A stretch of DNA of 64,000 bases from Polymyxa betae A26-41 (Eukaryota > Protista > Endomyxa: Phytomyxea), in the NCBI GenBank assembly GCA_003693705.1, contig RBZT01000564.1:1-64000 (forward strand), written 5' to 3'. Shown here piece after piece: positions 51,611-64,000 of the stretch. Each line of letters opens with the position of its first letter. Positions within the stretch are counted from its first letter, which is position 1. Under the pieces are notes generated by a model. It saw nothing but the letters and a program-made list of their open reading frames with translations. It did not search any database and was not told where the DNA came from. Made by a program: the position numbers and the translations under genes.

Positions 51611-54600
51611 TCATTGTGTGAGAGAGTTGTCGTCGACAAAGGCCTGGTTGTCGTCTGCGACAGTCTCGTCGTTGACGGCTTCAACCGCGATGTCGGTGGA
51701 GGCGTCGGCAGCCATGTCGTTGGGGACGTCAGCAGCCATGTCGTCGGCGGCGTCAGCAGCCATATCACTGGCGGCTTCGGCAGCCGTGTCGTTGGGGACG
51801 TCAGCAGCCATATCACTGGCGGCTTCGGCAGCCATGTCGTTGGGGGCGTCAGCAGCCATATCACTGGCTGCTTCAGCAGCCATGTCGTTGGCAGCCTCGG
51901 CAGCGCTGTCATTGAAGGCTTCGGCAAGAATGTCGTTGGCGGCGTCGGCTTCGATCCGCGATTGGCCCTGATACTCGGGAACTGGCAGCTGCTCGGCCAG
52001 GCTGGGAATGGGAGCTTCACCAAGGTGTTCGGTCGAGAGTTGTTCAGTCTTGCTGGGCACAGGCGCTTCTCCAATATGCTCCAAGATCGGCTGGGTGTCA
52101 TCGTCGGCGTACAACGAATGATGATAGGCGGTTATTGAAGGTAGATAGCCAGCAATGGCGTCGAACCACGATGACTGCTCAGGAGCGGTTTGTATGAGGA
52201 CAGTCTGCTTGGAATCCGAGCTGGTTGGCGAAACTTGAGGCCGATGTCCTGCTGCTTTTAGAGAAGCATTTACTGGAGCTCCAGCCTCCATGATTGAAGG
52301 TCGTTCAGGTTCATATCGTGCCATCTCGTGCTTCTCTTCAAAGCTGGATCCCGCGTTGTTCACCTTTCTTTCGTTAAGCTCGCGGTTTGTCTTGTCGTCC
52401 TTAAAAGCTGCTTTCGATTTCTTTTTGTGAGAATTGCGCTTGCCTTCGTTAGACTTAGCGTTCACCTTGCCTTCTTTCATCTTGCTTTCTTTTGAGTCCG
52501 TGTGCGCCTTCTCTTCGGGAAGAACAATGTTCTGAAGGGGCTTTTCGCTTGAGTTCCCTGTCTCATAAGCTTCTGAGGACATGATTTTCACATCAGGCTT
52601 TTCGAAATGCTGCATGATCAGCATAGAGTTCTTCATGGTCAGCATTGCGTCATCACCAGGATTTACACTGTCAGTGACGTTCTGACCCTGAAGCTGGTTG
52701 AGTTCCGTCCAAGGCTGAGCGTCCTCTGTGATTTTAGAGGGGACTTTATCCTCTGAACTGGTGTAGTTTTCTGGAGAGTTTTCTGGAGACAGCAATGAGG
52801 GTATCGGAGCGCCAAACAATATCTCATCGTCTTCTGGATGGTTAAGAAGCGTCTTTTTGCCGTCTTCTGTCTTTGGTGACTTGACTTCTTCAGAAGGTAT
52901 TCTGCTCGACGCCTTTTTTTCAGAAGATTCTGCAGTATAGTCTTGGCTTGACTTCGATATATTTCCAGGTTTGTCCAGAGAGCTGTTGAAGGTTTTGTCA
53001 AGCTGGTCATCTGTGGCGTTCGACGCATTCCAGAGCATTGCGATGTTCTTGAAGTCAGGCTTCTTAATAGATATCTTATCGTTGACCATGTTCTTGGTTG
53101 GCTTTGAATTTTGCTCTAGGGAACTTTTGCCGGTCGAAGCAGTCCTGTTATTGGTCCCAGAGAGCGGTACCGATTGATTTAACGGCAAGGAAGTGTTCGC
53201 AACTGCTTGGCGAGGAGTCTCGCTCAATACAGTGCTATTAGTTGCTTGCAGTTGAGTTGCGTTATTAGGAATCGGCCGTGGAGTTTCCAGAGGAGCTGAA
53301 GTTGCTAAGTTATTGTTAGCTATTGGCAACTGGGAAATATTTGCAGTCGCAGGACGAGCGATCGTCGAAGAATCTAAGGCCGATGCGTTACTCATGGGCG
53401 TCAGAGTTTGGGACGCATTAGCAACAACTGGACGTGAAGCTGCAGATTGCGCTGTGGCCGATACGTTGCCTGCAGATGAAATTGTCGCCGATATGTTGCC
53501 TGCAGATGGAGCTGTGGCCGATATGTTGCCTGCAGATGGAGCTGTCGCCGTTTTGTTGCCTGCAGATGGAGCTGTCGCCGTTTTGTTGCCTGCAGATGGA
53601 GCTGTGGCCGTTATGTTACCTGAAGATGGAGCTGTCCCCGAAACGTTGCTGCTAATTGCTTGCAATTGAGGAGCATAACTAGGTGTTGGCCGAGGGATCT
53701 CCACCGGGACCATAGTTGATACGGTATTGCTCAACGTTGGTGCTTGAGTGGCATTTACAGCGATTGGGCGAGAAGATGGAGCCACAGATGATACGTTATT
53801 GTTCGATATTGGCATCCATTGAGGAGTTGCCGAGTTAACGGCATTGCTGAAATTCACCCGAGGAACTGCCACTGATGCTGAACCATTCGTCGCGTTAGCA
53901 GTCTTGTTGGCGTTCACGGGAGAAGAGGCAATTGACGAACTAGCATTGCTGTGAGGTAGCATGGTGATATCTAAAGAAATGGTTAGTATCAATATCGTTA
54001 TTGCAATCTGATGAGCCTTACTGCTGTTGTCATTCTTGCCACCTGAAAGGATTTTTTTGGCCAATTCTCTGTCTTCAGGATTATTGCTACTCTCCATTCT
54101 TTTCAGTAGCTCATCGCGGTCGTGAGGTCCAAGTTGGTTTATCGCTTGTAAACGCTGACCGTTTTTGTCGCCACCTTGCTCGTTATGCTTCATGATTACA
54201 GCCGCCAGATTTCGGTCTGCGCTGTTGTTGCTCTTTTGCATGGCCGCAAGGATTTGAGGTTGTTTATCTTCCGGTATTGATTTGATCAGGTTTAGCTTTT
54301 CGTTCATATGGCGAACGAGCGCACGATCTGATCCAGAAATCATATTGCAGACATACCTGTCCAATGCTGATTCGCTTGTGGACATTGCTATTAGAGTCTG
54401 GGCTCTTTGCTTTGGTGTCATCGAGTTCAGTAACTCCAGTGTTTTCTTCATATGCTCGTTGACCTGAGATTGCTCTGAATCCGATAGCTTTATAGGAGCT
54501 GGTGTTGGCGTCGTTGTCGAATTTGTCCTGTTCTGAAAGGCAGGTTTCGGATTGACGACAACATTAAGTTCTGTGACACCGGCTTCACATATGGCGATAA

Positions 54601-54643
54601 TTAATATCAGCAGTGACAATGTTATCTTGCCAATGCCGGTCAT
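51611..54643 (-). CDS. Large secreted low-complexity repeat protein (~1000 aa; mucin-like or effector candidate)
   Basis: Signal-like MTGIGKITLSLLILIIAICEA, three helical repeats, an S/T/N/P-rich region, a Lys-rich block and acidic Ala/Asp repeats. Probable in-frame intron at 53971-54021. Confidence 0.8.
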   Translation of the reverse strand: MTGIGKITLSLLILIIAICEAGVTELNVVVNPKPAFQNRTNSTTTPTPAPIKLSDSEQSQVNEHMKKTLELLNSMTPKQRAQTLIAMSTSESALDRYVCNMISGSDRALVRHMNEKLNLIKSIPEDKQPQILAAMQKSNNSADRNLAAVIMKHNEQGGDKNGQRLQAINQLGPHDRDELLKRMESSNNPEDRELAKKILSGGKNDNSSKAHQIAITILILTISLDITMLPHSNASSSIASSPVNANKTANATNGSASVAVPRVNFSNAVNSATPQWMPISNNNVSSVAPSSRPIAVNATQAPTLSNTVSTMVPVEIPRPTPSYAPQLQAISSNVSGTAPSSGNITATAPSAGNKTATAPSAGNKTATAPSAGNISATAPSAGNISATISSAGNVSATAQSAASRPVVANASQTLTPMSNASALDSSTIARPATANISQLPIANNNLATSAPLETPRPIPNNATQLQATNSTVLSETPRQAVANTSLPLNQSVPLSGTNNRTASTGKSSLEQNSKPTKNMVNDKISIKKPDFKNIAMLWNASNATDDQLDKTFNSSLDKPGNISKSSQDYTAESSEKKASSRIPSEEVKSPKTEDGKKTLLNHPEDDEILFGAPIPSLLSPENSPENYTSSEDKVPSKITEDAQPWTELNQLQGQNVTDSVNPGDDAMLTMKNSMLIMQHFEKPDVKIMSSEAYETGNSSEKPLQNIVLPEEKAHTDSKESKMKEGKVNAKSNEGKRNSHKKKSKAAFKDDKTNRELNERKVNNAGSSFEEKHEMARYEPERPSIMEAGAPVNASLKAAGHRPQVSPTSSDSKQTVLIQTAPEQSSWFDAIAGYLPSITAYHHSLYADDDTQPILEHIGEAPVPSKTEQLSTEHLGEAPIPSLAEQLPVPEYQGQSRIEADAANDILAEAFNDSAAEAANDMAAEAASDMAADAPNDMAAEAASDMAADVPNDTAAEAASDMAADAADDMAADVPNDMAADASTDIAVEAVNDETVADDNQAFVDDNSLTQ
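51690..51950 (-). repeat. Coding tandem repeat, 24-bp unit (DMAAEAAS / DMAADAPN-type), about 10 copies
   Basis: Recurrent gcagccat(g/a)tc(g/a)..; alternating units form a 48-bp higher-order repeat. Confidence 0.9.
53441..53650 (-). repeat. Coding tandem repeat, 30-bp unit (TAPSAGNxS/TA), about 7 copies
   Basis: tgcagatggagctgt(g/c)gccg(a/t)t(a/t)tgttgcc recurs with a 30-bp period. Confidence 0.92.
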
Positions 54644-54861
54644 GGTTCGATCGTTTATACCGAGGAACGAAATTAATGTTAATATTACTTCGCGGTGGTT
54701 CGGGATCAAACTTGAAATAATGTAATAGCTTACCTGATGATGAGTTGGCGTTGATTCACATATAGACATTGACTCATCAAACAACGACCAGCTTAAATAT
54801 TTTTTAGAAAAAATATATCTGTTGATCTACAGTTTTTTACCAGTTTTATTATTACTTCTCT

Positions 54862-57800
54862 TCAGATGTCTTCGAATGCAGCACTCCTGATAGTTCCTCC
54901 AACTGCAGTTGATGCACAGACTGGGAACCATATTATGATTGTGCATATGAATACATATATGTAGAGCCATGTGGCAACGCCACTGGCGTACAATGCCGCA
55001 AATGCACCCAACGTTATTGATATAATCACCATGTATTCTTTGAAATACTTCCCCTGAAATTTGTCTTTGAGATAGCAAAGGACGGGAGTAGATATGAAAG
55101 CGATTGGCAAAACGACATTCAGAAGATCTGTATCGGAAAAGTCCACGAATGGTAGACCCAGCAGTTGATGAAATGCAAGCAAAAATAACGAATTCATAGC
55201 TCCAACAACAATACAGGTAGGGAGCGCCACCGAGTGATGTAGTTGGAAGTAACAATCAACCATGAAAAACAATAAAGCACCGGCGCTACAGCCATTCAGA
55301 TAAGAGAAGATCCCGGACACCGCTCCAAACAAGACAACATCTATGTTGTCCATTGCAGTAATACTTTGAACCTGTTAAAGGTTTTCGCGGACAGATAGCG
55401 CTGAGCTACACCCATCGTCAAAGAGAATGTGATAAATATGCCGATGGTTGCAAGAATAATAAGATCATGGTCGAAAACACCATCGACGAGGAAATAGGAG
55501 AACACGTCGCCCATGATAGCTCCAACTGTTCCCAGTATGGCCAAACTCCAGTCTATAGGCTGCCCCATGATGCCGTTAATAACTGCAGCCATACATAAGG
55601 CCGATATCTGCGACCAACTGTGAATTAGAAAGCGACGCCCCAACGAGATTGAAATTATCATGACCGAACCTGACCGAAGTTTGAAGCGTATCGAACACGA
55701 AGCTCTTCAGCCTGCGATTCGAGATTAAGAGTGGTCAAGGTCATCCCGAAACCGAAAGGCGTCCAAGACGAGACAACGGCGTCGCAGGCAGCAGTGACAG
55801 CGATAATGGGGTTCTTCAGGATTGAGTTCCATATCTAGAGAGGCAGCATTACTAACAGCAGATTTCGATTTCGAACTGCTCACCGAGGTAGGATCGATAA
55901 AGAATGTGATGCAAATGGCGGAGAGCGCAAGCAACAGAGCAGTCAATATGAGCGGCGAGCGACGCATCAGTCGCAGAACGGACGATGATGCTTTCGCGAT
56001 CCACAGGGACGTCGTTTGGGAGTCTTTTTTCGATTGGAACTATGCAGATCCTTGAAGATGGTTTGACGGACATCTATAGGAACGAATTTCAGCAGATCTT
56101 GCGTCTGTGGGAATTCGCGGGCGATATCTCTCAAGCCGCTCTTGACAACGCCGAAGTACCCTACGATCAGCATTCAGAAGAGGCGTTGAATCTGAGCAAA
56201 ATCAGACCGTAGATGTTAACAATGATGACCATAGCAATCAGAGTATAACCCAATGATAACTAGTTACAGATTAGCGCGAAGACGCTGACAGAAATGATCG
56301 AAACGAACCCGATCAGCAGCTAGTTGAGCTCGATCAAGGGTCAGCAGCTGGGAGAAATAACGGGCGACGTTGCCAGTAAAAGCGTTATCAATCTTAAACG
56401 CCAGATTGAAATCGTCGGATTGCAGCTGTTGCTGTAGGAAAGCGTCGCGTGTTGCAAAACCGGGAACGAAATTCGGACCCGATCGGATTTCTATAAGAAA
56501 CTTAAACACCATCGGAAGAGCAGCAAAATGAAACACCAACTTTGAATTCCGGTGTCGAAATCGTTAATCAATTGGGGTATAAGTCGAACCAATTCTGCAA
56601 TTAACGCTTGGCGACCATTTCGGGCCAGTCCATTCGAGAACGTGCGGCAATCCGGGGCAGCTGCGGCGATGTCCGGAATGAGACAGACGTCGCCGAACTC
56701 CCACTCGAAGTGCCCATTGCCCGAGTTTAAACAGCCTGGATAGTAGTCGTCACCGAGAACGCCGCCAAAGATCAGCGATCTTCGATGTTCTTCCGACAGT
56801 GCCACGTCGGTGATGACAGCAGCATGCTTCGAGGCCGTTGTGTTGGTGGCATTGCGCGAAAGCAGCATATCCGCCGATACGAGCAGCAGCTCTCGTGTAT
56901 TGAACAGCGCTCGTCGTAAAAGCGATCCCGAACGCCATCCGTATTGGAAGCGAGCCGGTAAGGGCGCCCTTGCGTCCGCCTACAAACACGTTTAGAGACA
57001 GATGAGCACTAACCCTAAAACCCTAACCTGACTGAGAATTCCAACATGTCTGTAAGTGAAAAAGATGACATAGAGAATGATGAGCTGGCCGAATTTGACC
57101 AGATAGCGCAACAGGCGCCGAGTTTTAAACTTGGATGTTTTGCGGATCTGGCTTTCGATGCGTTTCAGACCTTTCTGCTTGGCCGAATCGGTGTTCTTCT
57201 CTTTGGCGACCGTGTTGAAAATGTTGAACGAGGCTTCGGTTCGAGCATCACCTTCAATCGATGACGATTCGGTTTCAGTCTTTTGCAGGATCGAGATGCG
57301 GTCGTTGTATGGTGTGATGATGTTGTTGACCGATGCATTCGGAACATGGAATACTGTAATCATGGCAAGATCGTTACGCAGCTGGACGCCGATAATCGTC
57401 GCCCGAACCGCATACATGAACAGGAATATAGCGGCGGCGATTTGCAGAACGAGATCAGCTAGGTCTGAGAGCAGGATGAGTCGGTTCTGCTCTTTGGCGG
57501 CGTCCGTCCCGAATCCGGCCAGCTTGTTGCTGACTTCGGTCAGACTTTGAACGTTGTCGATGATATAACGCAGCGCGTTTGCATCAATTTGATCGAGTTG
57601 GTCAACCGGGACCGAGCTGATCTCCTTCGCAAGCTGATGATACATCTCGATTGCATTCAGGGTCGTCATATCGAATGTGCAGCTTGTATTGATGGATTCC
57701 GTACAGAAGATGACTGTGTACGTATCGGCGAGTGTCGTCATGATGATCGAATCCCAGCCAAGTCTGCCTGCAAGCAGACTATCTCGGCAAGCACCGGCAA

Positions 57801-60800
57801 TGGAAGCAAATTTTTGGACCGTGGCGAAATGCTTCTTGACCAAGGAATGGTCGGGATCCGAGATTAAGCCTCTGGAGATAAGATCGACGGCACGAATCGA
57901 ATCCGCTAGGCGTAGAACATCGATTCCAAACTCGCCCGAATAGTTCGCTGTCCCGATATCGGCCATGAAACTCGTCACGATGCGGTCGGCGACGAAGACC
58001 TGTCCCAGCGACAGGATCGCCAACATGAGAAAGACGGAGATGAATGCCCGATGCAGCCACTTCATCAGGACGAGCTCGAGCCGTTTTTGAACGGCGTCGT
58101 TGTTCGTATCGTTGCCGCCGGCCGCGCTTGACGTCGCGTTCGACGTGCGAGTCGGATGCTTTGGAATTCTCCGATAACGATATCGGGATGTCCTCTAAGA
58201 TAACTCCAGGTTTGCGGGAAGACGATCTCGCATCGTCCATGGTTTGCTTCCCCAAAATATCAATCCGGACGGTCACAGCAATTTCGTCGTCCAGTAAAGT
58301 CCAGGTCTGAAATCTACACAAGATGTGTCAAAGCAGTTCTGAATTTACAAAAGGACGGGTATAACCTTAATGCCATCTGGAATTTGACTCCGTCTTTTAC
58401 CAATGACATGAGACGGATATAGTCCGGATTGGAGGCGATTGCTTTCCGATACGCTGCATGCTGCGCTTCGATATCAGGAATTATGTCCTGGATGTGAATG
58501 TTGTGCAAATCGACGCGATCCTTCTCAATGCCGAACTGCAATGACACCGTTTGCGAGATAGCTGTGACGACGCCAGCTCGATCAAAAATGATAATAAGCG
58601 AATCGGGATTGGTGGATTCAATGACGCCAATGAAGCAGAGTGTGCTGAGATCTTTCACGAACGCCTTCACAAAAATATTGACGTCTTGAATGTAACCGTT
58701 CTGGTGCAGAATGACGAGGTTGCTCTTGCCGTCAATTAACCTCTGGACGCCCTGCTGTAGGTTGCGCAAAAGCATTCCATCGTGGTTCGATGCGAACGGC
58801 TCTGGCATGATAATCCTGACCAGATTTCAAATCCAGTACGTCCGGGAGCGCTTGGCGCCTACCTGCAGTTCTTGCCGACTAGTACCGACGTTGAGAATCC
58901 CAATAGCTGAGCTGCCCGTGAATTGCAATCAATGATAACGCCAAAATTTCGCATATTCCCACTAATTAGGACAACCGCAGCTATCGGTGGAATTTAGTGA
59001 CTTCAAGAGGAATTTAGCAAGCTTGTTACCTCGATCATCGAAAAGTAGGTCCTTGAAAACGGAAGTCTGTTTCATTTTCGCCTTTGCTTGTTGCATTTCT
59101 TTCGCTCTCTCCAGCAGACGGTCGCCAGATCGGAAGTCTCTCAGAATCGTCAATACAAACCCACTAAATCGGAGCACATGAGCGAACCCAAAACTCAAAA
59201 AAAGATTACAGTAACTGTAAGATTGCAGAGCAGTCACCGAATCATCAGAAATACTGATAGCCTTGGCGTAATTGGAATAGGCGGTTTTGGATTCGTTGCT
59301 GATTTGGACAGCTAGCTCCCTCATTCTGTCATCATCGGGTTTCGATTTCAGAGCTTCAGTCCAGAAATCGATCGTGGCTTGAACAATCCTCAGATCCAAG
59401 TTTTGTGCTCGCTCCAGGAGATCGCGCTGAGTATTATACTGTATAATCTCACTGTTCGATTCCGATTCGAAGATTCGGTCTTCAATAGTCCTTTGAATAC
59501 GATATAAAAGAAATCGCTCGTCAGCTTTCGGATTTAGGACAGAGACCTGATCCAAGTACATATAGGCAAGGAAATAGATGCGAGCGATGTCAATTTGGAA
59601 AGTTGCCGCAGCCAGCAATAAATGGATCGAATCTGGGAATCGAGTCAGCGACGTGACAATGATAGACTTGCATTCGTGAAAGTCCATCATTTCAGCATGA
59701 TGGTCTCCTTTCTGTGGCTTATCACCAGCATTCAGTTCAATGACAACGTCTTCTTTGTCATCGAGATCCTCGCAATCAACTTTTGCTCGAACTTGTTGCT
59801 TAAGCAATGCAGTTTTCATTGCGGTCTGATCTACGTCTTGCAGAGCAATTCGAAACCGAATTTGGACCTCCCAAGGGTTGTTTAGTTCCGTAATTGGTAC
59901 AGCTCGAAGGTGCTCGAAACGACCTTGAATGATGAGATACGATGATAGAACCACGACTGGAATTCCACCAAGAAACATGAATACGGCTCCTCCGCTAGAA
60001 TCGTTGTTGTAAACGGATGCTACAATGGCGCTCAGACTCGCCCAGGAGAATATCCAAGATAGCGCCGCTTGATAGTGCATCATGCGGTAATCATAATAAG
60101 GCAGGTACATCGTGATCAGATAAGACACCGATACCGACAATGCAAACGCCGAAATGCTCAACAGTAAGGCGTTCGTCGTACAAACCGAGATTATTACAAG
60201 CAGTATCTGAATTTCAATCAGAAAGGCCAAACAAAACCCTCTCAAAAATCATACTTTGCAAAACGCATAAAACACATCAATCCGGGACTGAGCCCGCGCG
60301 GAAACCGACTTCGATAACGGATTCATATCGAATACGGCACTGATATAGCAAATGCTGACGAACACAGTTGGCAACAATGCCAGAAACCCAAGAAACTGAT
60401 TCAAAGCATTACTGCTCAGGATCTGCTGGAACAAAACGCGAATGATAGGCACGAAGCCAACCGAGACCATCAGGTTTGCTAGGACGGAATAGAGCTCCAT
60501 TATCACAGGAATCTGATTGTTTTGTTTTATCAACCATGCTATAGCGACACCTCCGCCTGCAATTACACAGAGGTTATTTAGGCCGTCAACGTGAGAAATT
60601 CCAATGCTAGATGGGAAGGAATGATCAATTAAGAATTTGACATACCTAGGAGAAGACCTATCAGTGATAATGCGATCTGAAAAGCGGATTGCAGAAGTCC
60701 TACTGAGTCCAGTACAGATTCTGAGAATAACGAACAGAACGAAATTACTGGCTGAGCATGAACTTGGCTCCAAGGAATCAATGCAGATGATCCGTTTAAA

Positions 60801-60991
60801 GCAAATAAAATGCCGATAATTTGTATGGTTTGAATCACAGAGCTCAGCTGCGATAAATAGCGCGTCGAACTTTGAATCGAATTCAGCGAGAAAAGGATCT
60901 TGAACAGCCCTTCAGTGATCTCATGATACGACTGCTGTATATAAGTGGCTATCGACTCATTATTTGTATCATTGATTAGGCCATCCGACAT
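54862..60991 (-). CDS. TmcB/TmcC-like multi-TM PAS-domain protein with C-terminal TauE/SafE-like transporter domain, copy 1 (two apparent 1-nt deletions)
   Basis: N-terminal TM block (FDMNPLSKSVSARAQSRID, YLPYY), helical region, PAS domain (GVIIDCNSRAAQLLGFS..IIMPEPFASNHDGML), two TM-loop-TM modules, then a multi-TM tail IDWSLAILGTVGAIMG..GAVSGIFSYLNGCSAG..VALPTCIVVGAMNS. Confidence 0.78.
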
Positions 60992-61749
60992 GGTCAGATC
61001 CGGGTCGGCGTTTCCAGCTATTGTGACCTAATGCAAATGAGTAAATGACGATGCAGATAGGCAGATGATGACCGTTTCTAACGTTGAGCTGGCTCTGCAT
61101 CTATGACCGGTTCGACTGTCGGGTGGTAGTCACATTTGCAAAACCAGTCTGAAGATCACCCGACGACGCCTGGTGGCGACTGGCAATGAAGGCAGGAGCA
61201 ATTCGCCGGGCAAGAACTGGAATGCTTGGCAAATATCCATTCAGCATGAGCTACCTACACCAAGTGGTACGAGCCAGAAAGGGGGTCCAGACGCCGACGA
61301 CGACTTTGCTTCAAGCCTTTTGTGAGGAAATGAAGGCCACATCGGATCATTGAAATGGGAGATAGACATCTCCCTTTTAAGAAAGACCCACTTGCGTATT
61401 ATGTTTCAGCAGGTATCAAATGCACGATCGTTAGGAGAACAAATTCCAGGAAATTGACACTTGAAGATAGTCATGAGAGATGGTAACAGAAAGAAATCGG
61501 CCCCAAGACGAGTAACACTCGAAGGCTAGTCTTTCTACAACTACATATCCTATATTGTTAGTCTTTCACCAGTTAGGTGATAAGAGACAGCATCGAATGC
61601 AAGTTCATACGTACCACATTGACGGTCCTGTCCTGTTTCTGTATTCATTACATTTAAATTATACAGGCATGCTTTGCCTTGACGATCACGGTTTTCTCTT
61701 GAGTAATCATTTTTACAACAGTCCTTCATTTGACAGTCAACTACATTTT

Positions 61750-64000
61750 TTATACGTCTTCAAAAGCAGCGCTTCTGATGGTGCCACCAACTGCAGTTGA
61801 CGCGCAGACTGGGAGCCAGAGTACGAGTGCACATATAAATACATAAATATAGATCCATGTGCCGACACCTCTAGCTGACGCCGCTATAAACACACCGAAT
61901 GCAATCGAGATAATCACCATATATTCTTTGAAATACCTTCCCTGCGATCTGACGCTGAAATAGCAAAGCACAGGGGTTGATATGAAAACGATTGGAAGAA
62001 TAACATTCAGCAAATCTGTATCCGAAAAATCTACGTACGGTATGTCCAGCAACTGATGGAATCCAAGTAAGAACAGGGAATTCACAGCTCCTACTAATAT
62101 AGAGGTGGGAAGAGCGATTGAAAAGTGCAGCTGGAAATAACAGTCGACCATAAAGAAAAACAAAGCGCCACAGCTAGAGCCGTTAAGGTACGAGAAAGCC
62201 CCAGACAAAGCTCCAAATAACAGAACATCAACATGATCCATGCCAGTGATATTTTGAACCTTTTTAAACATTTTCGCAGAAAGATAACGTTGTGCTATGC
62301 CCATCGTTAACGAATATGTAATAAATAGGGCGAAAGTAACAAGATTAACAAGATCTCTGTCGAAGACACCATCGACCAAAAAATAGGAAAAGATATTGCC
62401 CAAGATGGACCCTATTGTTCCAAACAGAGCCATATTCCACTCTATGGGTTGTCCGAGAATTCCATTCATCAAAGTAGCCATGCATAGAGCAGTCATCTGA
62501 ATCAATATACGTGAGAACACGGAAGCTAAATAAACTACAGCTATGAACATACCTGACCAAAATGTGTAGCAAGTGCGACCCTGACCTCTTCAGCAGTCGT
62601 ATCGAAGTTGATGTTGGTCAAAATGAACCCAAAACCGAAAGGAGTCCAAGATGAGATTATAGAATCACATGCAGCACCAAAGGCAGCCAAAGGATTTGAG
62701 GTCAATGATTTCCAAATCTAGCAGACAGCATCAGTAATTGCAGTTAAAATTCCGAAGGTCCTAACCGATGACGGATCCGTAAAGAATGTTAGGCAAATTG
62801 CTGAAATTCCAAGGAACAAAGCAGTCGATAAGAGTGGTGATCGTCGCAGCTGGCGCAAAACAGCTAATGGGGCCTTGCTAAGTAATGAGATAGACCTAGT
62901 TGACCGGTCGTCATTTTTGGACTTCTTGTGTAAGTCTTTCGAAATCATTTCGCGGATCTCTACTGGAACGAACTTCAGCAGGTCTTGGGTTTGTGTGAAC
63001 TCACGAGCAATATCTCTTAAAGCGCTCATTACTACACCAAGATAACCTATAATGAGCAATTCAGCACGAAATGTTCGGGTGCTCATTTGAAGAGATTCCA
63101 GACCGTATATATTGATGATGATAACCATGGCAATCAAAGTGTAGCCTAAATCTAACTGCCCACAGATCAGACAGTGCGGTGCTAGTCAAATCGTAAGCTC
63201 ACCCGTTCGACCGCTAGTTGAGCTCGGTCAACTGTGAGAAGGTGAGCGAAATAGCGAGCGGTGTTTCCATTGAAGTTGTTGTCGATTTTCAACGCCAGAT
63301 TCAAGTCATGAGATTGGAGTTGCGCCCTTAGGAAGTCATTTCGTGCTTGAATACCGGGAGCGAAACTCGGATCCGATCGAATATCTAAAATGCGATTGAA
63401 AGTGGCAACCAAACTAAAGATTGACTACCGACTTTTGATTAAGGAATCCATATCCGTAATGATTTGCGGTATCAGACGAACTAATTCTGCTAAAAGCGCT
63501 TGCCGACCGTTGCGAGCAAGCCCATTAGAAAACGTCCCGCAATCCGGTGCAGCAGTAGCCACATCCGGAATGAAGCAGACATCGGAAAACTCCAGTTCAA
63601 AATGGCCATTGCCTGCAGTTAAATAGCCTGGATAGTAATCGCCGCCCAAGTCACCGCCGAAGATTAACGCTCTTCGCTGAATTTCAGACATGGCAATATC
63701 AGCGTCGATGGAGGCATGAAGACCGGCTGTGTTGTTAACAGCATCATGCGAAAGTAGCATGTCTGCAGATACGAGTAGCAATTCCCGAGTATTAAATAGA
63801 GCTCGCCGCAATAAGGCTGCAGATCGCCACCCAAATTGAAAGCGAACTGGTAAGGGTGCTCTGGAGTGAGCCTGAAAACTTATAAGTGAAGCATGGAAAA
63901 TTATACTTTGGATCACCACCTGACTCAAAATGCCGACATGTCTGTACGTGAAGAAGAACGTGTAAAGGACGACAAGTTGACCGAATTTCAGGAAGTAGCG
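61750..64000 (-). CDS. Tandem paralog (copy 2, 3' part only) of the TmcB-like/TauE-like fusion gene
   Basis: Collinear with 54862-57120, with the same intron positions and shared peptides TFSNGLARNGRQAL, LRDIAREF.QTQDLLKFVP, SSWTPFGFG and STAVGGTIRSAAFED. The frame is intact after splicing. Confidence 0.85.

Follow-up and report, generated by a model that had tools for sequence, protein, structure and literature searches.

Judged from its sequence, a gene that crosses the end of the 64,000-nucleotide (nt) stretch of Polymyxa betae A26-41 DNA analysed here encodes a genuine domain fusion, in which a single reading frame runs from a TmcB-like receptor with PAS-like units into a divergent TauE fold. 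The stretch, referred to as the window, comprises bases 1-64000 of contig C409 (RBZT01000564.1). Polymyxa betae is an obligate root endoparasite and the vector of a major sugar-beet virus. Extending the contig DNA past the window end and aligning the copies revealed two paralogues lying head to tail, both on the minus strand: copy 1 (60991-54862), entirely within the window, and copy 2 (C409:68345-61750), of which 61750-64000 falls in the window and whose start at C409:68345 lies beyond it. The contig belongs to a draft genome of 1,001 contigs and 27,085,946 bp with a GC content of 45.1%, assembled from Illumina data at 225x (PMC6328671).

Receptor and TauE-like parts share one reading frame in copy 2

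The gene model of copy 2 consists of 12 exons separated by 11 GT-AG introns of 44-95 nt, eight of which measure 47-53 nt, and its coding sequence of 6009 nt (2002 codons) contains no internal stop. The introns of both copies are very short (44-62 nt, plus one of 89/95 nt), and because some of them keep the frame and contain no stop, intron retention would pass unnoticed at the level of the open reading frame (ORF). The parts of copy 2 that bear on the fusion are the following (TM, transmembrane).

61750-62496, minus strand: exon 12, TauE-like helices 3-8, conserved C-terminal tail and stop codon (gene model, PF01925, hhalign, AF2 and Atlas)
62553-62717, minus strand: exon 11, second TauE-like helix region with a degenerate first glycine-rich motif (GT-AG introns of 48 nt and 56 nt, conserved in copy 1)
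62766-63155, minus strand: exon 10 (junction), last TmcB-type TM helix, DLLKFVP, linker and first TauE-like TM helix (uninterrupted frame)
63203-63871, minus strand: exons 9 (63203-63384) and 8 (63433-63871), second loop domain between two TM helices
C409:63872-63919, minus strand: intron 7
63920-64000, minus strand: 3' end of exon 7, which runs on to C409:65660 past the window

The junction exon reads in one frame from the last TmcB-type TM helix through the motif ..EFTQTQDLLKFVP.. and a linker of ~45 amino acids (aa), and so reaches the TM helix that opens the C-terminal domain. Given that the whole junction lies inside one exon, no intron removal is needed there. A preliminary description of this DNA had read copy 2 as continuous from a TmcB-like TM-loop-TM region into a multi-TM domain; the stop-free model of 12 exons, with the junction in a single exon, bears this out, and less splicing is required than had been supposed.

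The same junction recurs in three further sequences. C271, a third and diverged paralogue in this genome, carries within one 477-aa ORF the motif, six TauE-like helices (1-6) and, between them, a linker of ~75 aa; the next exon supplies its remaining TauE-like helices, and TPR_TmcB is found 3 kb upstream on the same strand. P0001, a 304-aa UniParc fragment, has the same junction at 37% identity, as does P0004, a 314-aa ORF present on two contigs of the ENA metagenome collection (29% identity in the phmmer search, 27% in a MAFFT alignment). Together, the comparisons indicate that the fusion family in this genome is made up of two intact members, copy 2 and C271, and the decaying copy 1, with at least two further sequences elsewhere.

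The receptor part carries TPR_TmcB and PAS-like units, the first probably of FixL type

The receptor part was recognized by its TPR_TmcB domain (PF25474, cut-off 27 bits), which scored above the cut-off in exon 3 of copy 1 (44.6 bits) and, in a six-frame search of the genome, gave the C409 copies 35.1 and 32.1 bits and C271 64.2 bits. At least seven TPR_TmcB loci, at six gene positions, were found in the genome together with an N-terminal TM block and PAS units. The fusion proteins thus resemble the TmcB (tiny macrocysts protein B) family of protists in having TPR_TmcB above cut-off, the N-terminal TM block and PAS units; they differ from it in that, among the seven loci, Pfam places a TauE match beside TPR_TmcB only in the two C409 copies and in C271.

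Hydropathy of the copy 2 model describes a multi-TM protein with the PAS region between the TPR domain and the later TM helices. The first PAS unit is split by a 47-nt intron, because of which PAS was missed in the first Pfam scan. Exon 5 alone gave four weak PAS-family matches in Pfam, and in the C375 paralogue, where the N-terminal half of the domain through the His motif lies in one exon, the Pfam PAS score was 21.6 bits against a cut-off of 22.6. A profile of the PAS region matched the haem-binding PAS of FixL (1d06_A) with an E-value of 4.2e-7 across the ..MPEP....HDG.L.R.. stretch. The FixL-like pattern ..PEP....H.....NL..G.. characterizes the first PAS unit across the TmcB-like paralogues (window 58368-58814 and 58865-58978; L012:5086-5790; C375, C613 and C482), and the His aligned to that of the FixL HDG was present in all six intact paralogue sequences examined (C409 copy 1 and copy 2, C271, C375, C613 and C482). 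This His we take to be the haem ligand of FixL; the position of the FixL distal Arg does not seem to be kept in the family. A second PAS-like unit follows the first. The AF2 model of the PAS region, built on an alignment of five sequences, had a pLDDT of 33.5, too low for use. These matches point to a real PAS unit, probably of FixL-like type, in agreement with the PAS domain proposed at the outset, and suggest that members of the TmcB-like family may be haem-based sensors. The resemblance to the haem-binding PAS of FixL (PDB 1d06, 1dp6 and 1xj2) does not extend to the output, as there is no histidine kinase in the fused family.

In copy 2 a low-complexity linker of ~150 aa, rich in Ser, Asp and Lys (C409:65047-65516), separates the PAS units from the first TM-loop-TM module. 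Past it come two successive modules of TM helix, loop, TM helix and juxtamembrane helix, and the second juxtamembrane helix is the one fused to the TauE-like domain. The loop domain encoded by exons 8 and 9 had no match in Pfam; we infer that it lies outside the membrane.

In the preliminary description, TmcB-type proteins were taken to end after the last TM helix or in a cyclase domain; the cyclase ending was not borne out in this genome, no cyclase domain being found in the same gene as any TPR_TmcB locus. The idea that the DLLK..P motif is a remnant of a cyclase transducer element was likewise not supported. A profile of the motif compared with PDB returned no cyclase, and its one match, to the PstA coupling helix, fell short of significance (E 0.06). 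Literature on the TmcB family was searched as well, and almost nothing was found, with a single full-text mention of 'tiny macrocysts'.

The end of another contig (C919:371-832, L015) holds the decayed remains of a TmcB-like PAS region, with six in-frame stops and 51% identity to the C271 gene.

The C-terminal domain is a divergent TauE/TSUP module

To place the C-terminal domain, exon 12 of copy 2 was used as query in an exhaustive phmmer search of 1.84 billion representatives (E<=0.001), which returned 17 proteins, including the fused fragments P0001 and P0004 and a 56-aa fragment of the conserved tail, P0002. All eight of the other hits that were scanned in Pfam were PF01925-positive (E 2e-11 to 2.5e-4, library-wide). 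Comparison by hhalign of the fusion-family alignment with PF01925-positive proteins gave a probability of 99.9% and an E-value of 2.3e-35 over 264 columns. The AF2 model of exon 12 (helices 3-8), built on a 21-sequence alignment, reached a pLDDT of 85.4 and a pTM of 0.82, and a fold search of the Atlas with this model returned a single cluster, 100% PF01925, at a TM-score of 0.70/0.70 over 203 residues (root-mean-square deviation 2.7). P0004 independently falls in TauE clusters. PDB held no comparable structure for the TauE fold. In the alignment, the fused module retains the second-half glycine-rich motif G..GG..S.L.G.G and the P-T-S...N-S motif. Exon 11 of copy 2 was matched by eye to the same region of P0001, MAFFT having put this short exon elsewhere. 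Taken together, sequence profile and predicted fold mark the C-terminal domain as a divergent TauE/TSUP module, homologous to that family and of TauE fold. With the TauE/SafE sulfite/sulfoacetate exporter family (PF01925; TSUP, TC 2.A.102) it thus shares ~264 homologous columns, the helix order and the fold; known members of that family are stand-alone proteins of ~250-400 aa, whereas the fused module accounts for the last eighth, at the C terminus, of a receptor 2000 aa long.

Among long proteins, the closest relative that the fused module has is P0003, an 876-aa protein of the green alga Cymbomonas tetramitiformis (KAK3232867.1) with a tandem TauE-TauE arrangement. The genome has one stand-alone TauE gene (C439:72489-73592, 54 bits), of a subfamily different from that of the fused module, so that the fusion is not a recent copy of it; its GIGGG type is presumably that of plant TauE-like proteins. 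A further 'TauE' match, in C348, was treated as a false positive and reads as a multi-pass membrane protein, which we take to be ceramidase-like.

None of the 17 phmmer hits was a long fused protein, although the search was seeded by a divergent exon and fusions with another TauE subfamily could escape it. A word-index search with P0001 matched only P0001 itself, the 816-aa C271 ORF had no match, a scan of JGI metagenomes found nothing, and an Atlas feature search with the C271 ORF gave no usable match. From the phmmer search the family would appear very rare in databases, and it is probably a lineage-restricted family of a plasmodiophorid that encodes multi-pass membrane proteins of ~2000 aa. 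We found no description of the TmcB-TauE architecture in the literature and no full-length database protein that has it, which agrees with the first impression that it was new.

The strength of selection was estimated from copy 1 and copy 2. Their dN/dS (ratio of nonsynonymous to synonymous substitution rates) was 0.06-0.22, TauE exons included, at a saturated dS of ~1-2. In the tail, STAVGGTIRSAAFED[I/V], 15 of 16 residues are identical between the copies while 9 of 48 nucleotides differ, and the tail recurs in P0002, which is an environmental sequence. These values support purifying selection over most of the divergence between the copies, as had been suspected from the tail alone.

Two candidate readings: a regulated permease or a module that no longer transports

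From N to C terminus, the protein would begin with a block of ~7-8 TM helices, followed in the cytosol by TPR_TmcB and then by a pair of PAS-like units, of which the first resembles the haem pocket of FixL, and the low-complexity linker. Two modules, each predicted as a TM helix, a large loop, a TM helix and a juxtamembrane helix, would come next, and a TauE/TSUP domain of the 8-TM type with the conserved tail would close the chain, joined directly to the second juxtamembrane helix (..EF.Q.QDLLK..P..) by a short variable linker. With a probability of roughly 35-40%, we read the TauE module as the output or partner of the receptor, that is, the whole as a regulated permease or transceptor. Conformational changes in the loop and PAS domains would travel along the juxtamembrane helix to open or close a small-anion pathway; alternatively, signalling would run in the other direction, occupancy of the anion pathway being reported back to the receptor. 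Under a transceptor reading, the absence of several charged residues of the nearest canonical relatives would mean an altered chemistry. That the sensor would be coupled to an anion or sulfur-compound permease, as proposed in the preliminary description, we purely infer. A more specific version, which we consider distinctly unlikely, would make the family a new class of receptor-gated permease, with a FixL-like PAS (possibly sensing haem or redox state) and two loop domains of putative extracellular location controlling a TSUP/TauE anion pathway within one polypeptide. If true, the transceptor would be built into the polypeptide and would occur only in plasmodiophorids and in a few protists not yet sampled, and it might link the oxygen or redox state of the host root to export of sulfur anions.

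Yeast offers known transceptors and transporter-like sensors, such as Pho84, Gap1 and Mep2, and Snf3/Rgt2. The likeness is one of concept, a transporter fold physically tied to signalling, with no homology; in yeast the transporter itself signals or bears only a tail, whereas the fused family has a complete multi-domain receptor upstream of the permease fold.

Several observations weigh against the overall explanation or limit it. The PF01925 scores are all below the gathering threshold of 32.6 bits, in the window copies (17.7 bits for copy 1 and 23.6 bits, profile positions 38-236, for copy 2) as well as in C271 (22.5), P0001 (27.6) and P0004 (29.5), the scores of the window copies being lowered by the exon split. 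The R-D-F motif, the D of S-G-x-D and the E-K pair, invariant or nearly so in the closest canonical PF01925 proteins, are lost in the window copies and in P0001; C271 has lost the same charged positions except the R of R-D-F. Since the alignment behind the AF2 model held bona fide TauE proteins, the fold match depends in part on the sequence result. P0001 and P0004 are fragments only, and all searches were made exon by exon, the joined coding sequence of copy 2 serving only for checks of phase and stops and for hydropathy. The TauE/SafE-like pattern first noticed thus stands as regards profile comparison, fold and second-half motifs, with scores that stay below the Pfam threshold and with the charged residues lost in the window copies.

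The loss of charged residues, most of which are still kept by the more distant fused P0004, fits equally well with a fusion that is real and whose TauE-like module no longer transports, persisting instead as a scaffold in the membrane, as an oligomerisation domain or as a 'dead transporter' that senses by binding a ligand. The sub-threshold Pfam scores likewise favour such a role, which we rate as somewhat unlikely. Against it, dN/dS over the module is 0.08-0.22, the second-half glycine-rich and P-T-S...N-S motifs are kept, and the full fold is modelled with confidence; moreover, the residues needed for TauE transport are not established and there is no solved structure.

Copy 1 is most likely a young pseudogene

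Copy 1 shares its organization with copy 2: all 11 introns lie at the copy 2 positions and eight of the 12 exons are equal in length.

60255-60991, minus strand: N-terminal multi-TM block, judged by the hydropathy of its paralogue copy 2; exon 1 (60646-60991) has the start codon at 60991 and is followed by exon 2 (60255-60556)
59215-60206, minus strand: exon 3, TPR_TmcB domain (PF25474) preceded by the final helices of the N-terminal TM block
59164-59214, minus strand: intron 3, donor lost (TT, not GT) after a 5-nt insertion; 51 nt, in frame and stop-free
58366-58980, minus strand: exons 5 (58863-58980) and 6 (58366-58815), tandem PAS-like units, the first FixL-like
57028-58313, minus strand: exon 7, TM-loop-TM module 1 preceded by the end of the second PAS unit; a frame-shifting deletion of 455 nt at 58170-58156 removes the low-complexity linker
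55884-56259, minus strand: exon 10 (junction), two frame shifts: one of -9 and -1 nt at 56182/56173 (the 1-nt deletion at 56173), the other of net -4 nt at 56040-56012
55670-55834, minus strand: exon 11
54862-55607, minus strand: exon 12, TauE-like helices 3-8 and tail; 1-nt deletion near 55377 (PF01925)

The description of copy 1 as collinear with copy 2, with an N-terminal TM block and PAS domain, is therefore right as to the shared introns and the blocks present and incomplete as to four frame-breaking indels and the lost donor of intron 3. As assembled, copy 1 cannot make the full protein. Given that the assembly rests on Illumina data at 225x, the indels are probably real and artefacts unlikely, and copy 1 is most likely a young pseudogene. 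Within the TPR_TmcB exon, a tract of ~800 nt (copy 1 59272-60068 and copy 2 C409:66617-67416) is 95-98% identical, against ~70% elsewhere between the copies, which points to recent gene conversion despite the decay of copy 1.

That copy 1 is functional, through extra short introns absent from copy 2 or through frameshifting at an A-rich run near 56030, seems highly doubtful to us. GT..AG pairs of 46, 47 and 50 nt would restore the frame at 58204-58159, 56207-56161 and 56040-55991, and the downstream exons are still open and conserved. However, 6-11 frame-restoring GT..AG pairs arise by chance for each lesion, so that candidate rescue introns carry no weight; an AAG end is seen in two of the three best candidates, as against YAG in all 22 shared introns, and splicing out the candidates would remove residues that copy 2 encodes. 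Neither the 1-nt deletion at 55377 nor the lost donor at 59214 would be mended in any case.

Directly downstream of copy 1 lies a 1057-aa ORF (51611-54784 of the window, minus strand) that is rich in short repeats and in sequons for N-glycosylation; it has no connection with the fusion, and its product is probably secreted or displayed at the surface. The C271 paralogue is adjoined by an Arp2 ORF with 91% identity to Arp2 of Plasmodiophora brassicae.

Linkers of the family argue against two separate genes

The linkers between the motif and the first TauE helix vary in length and sequence across the family, and the frame is open in every case. The arrangement could also consist of a gene for a TmcB-like receptor with a separate gene for a small TauE permease beside it, and a Met is present in the linker of copy 1 and in that of copy 2; yet the junction falls within one exon of copy 2 and within one ORF in each of C271, P0001 and P0004, at 25-37% identity, there is no space for a promoter or terminator, and the linkers of C271 and P0001 have no Met, so that the permease part cannot start alone there, all of which makes this explanation very unlikely, hardly deserving any credence.

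Meaning for the two families and for Polymyxa betae

Signalling in Polymyxa betae is essentially unknown, and the present value of the fusion is that of a testable lead, an architecture at the level of sequence. TauE/TSUP permeases are widespread and poorly understood, with no solved structure and few known substrates, and TmcB-like receptors are nearly without literature. A natural TmcB-TauE fusion would give a concrete handle on both families: it predicts that the juxtamembrane helix of TmcB communicates with the permease fold, and it raises the possibility that PAS domains of the TmcB type bind haem in the manner of FixL.

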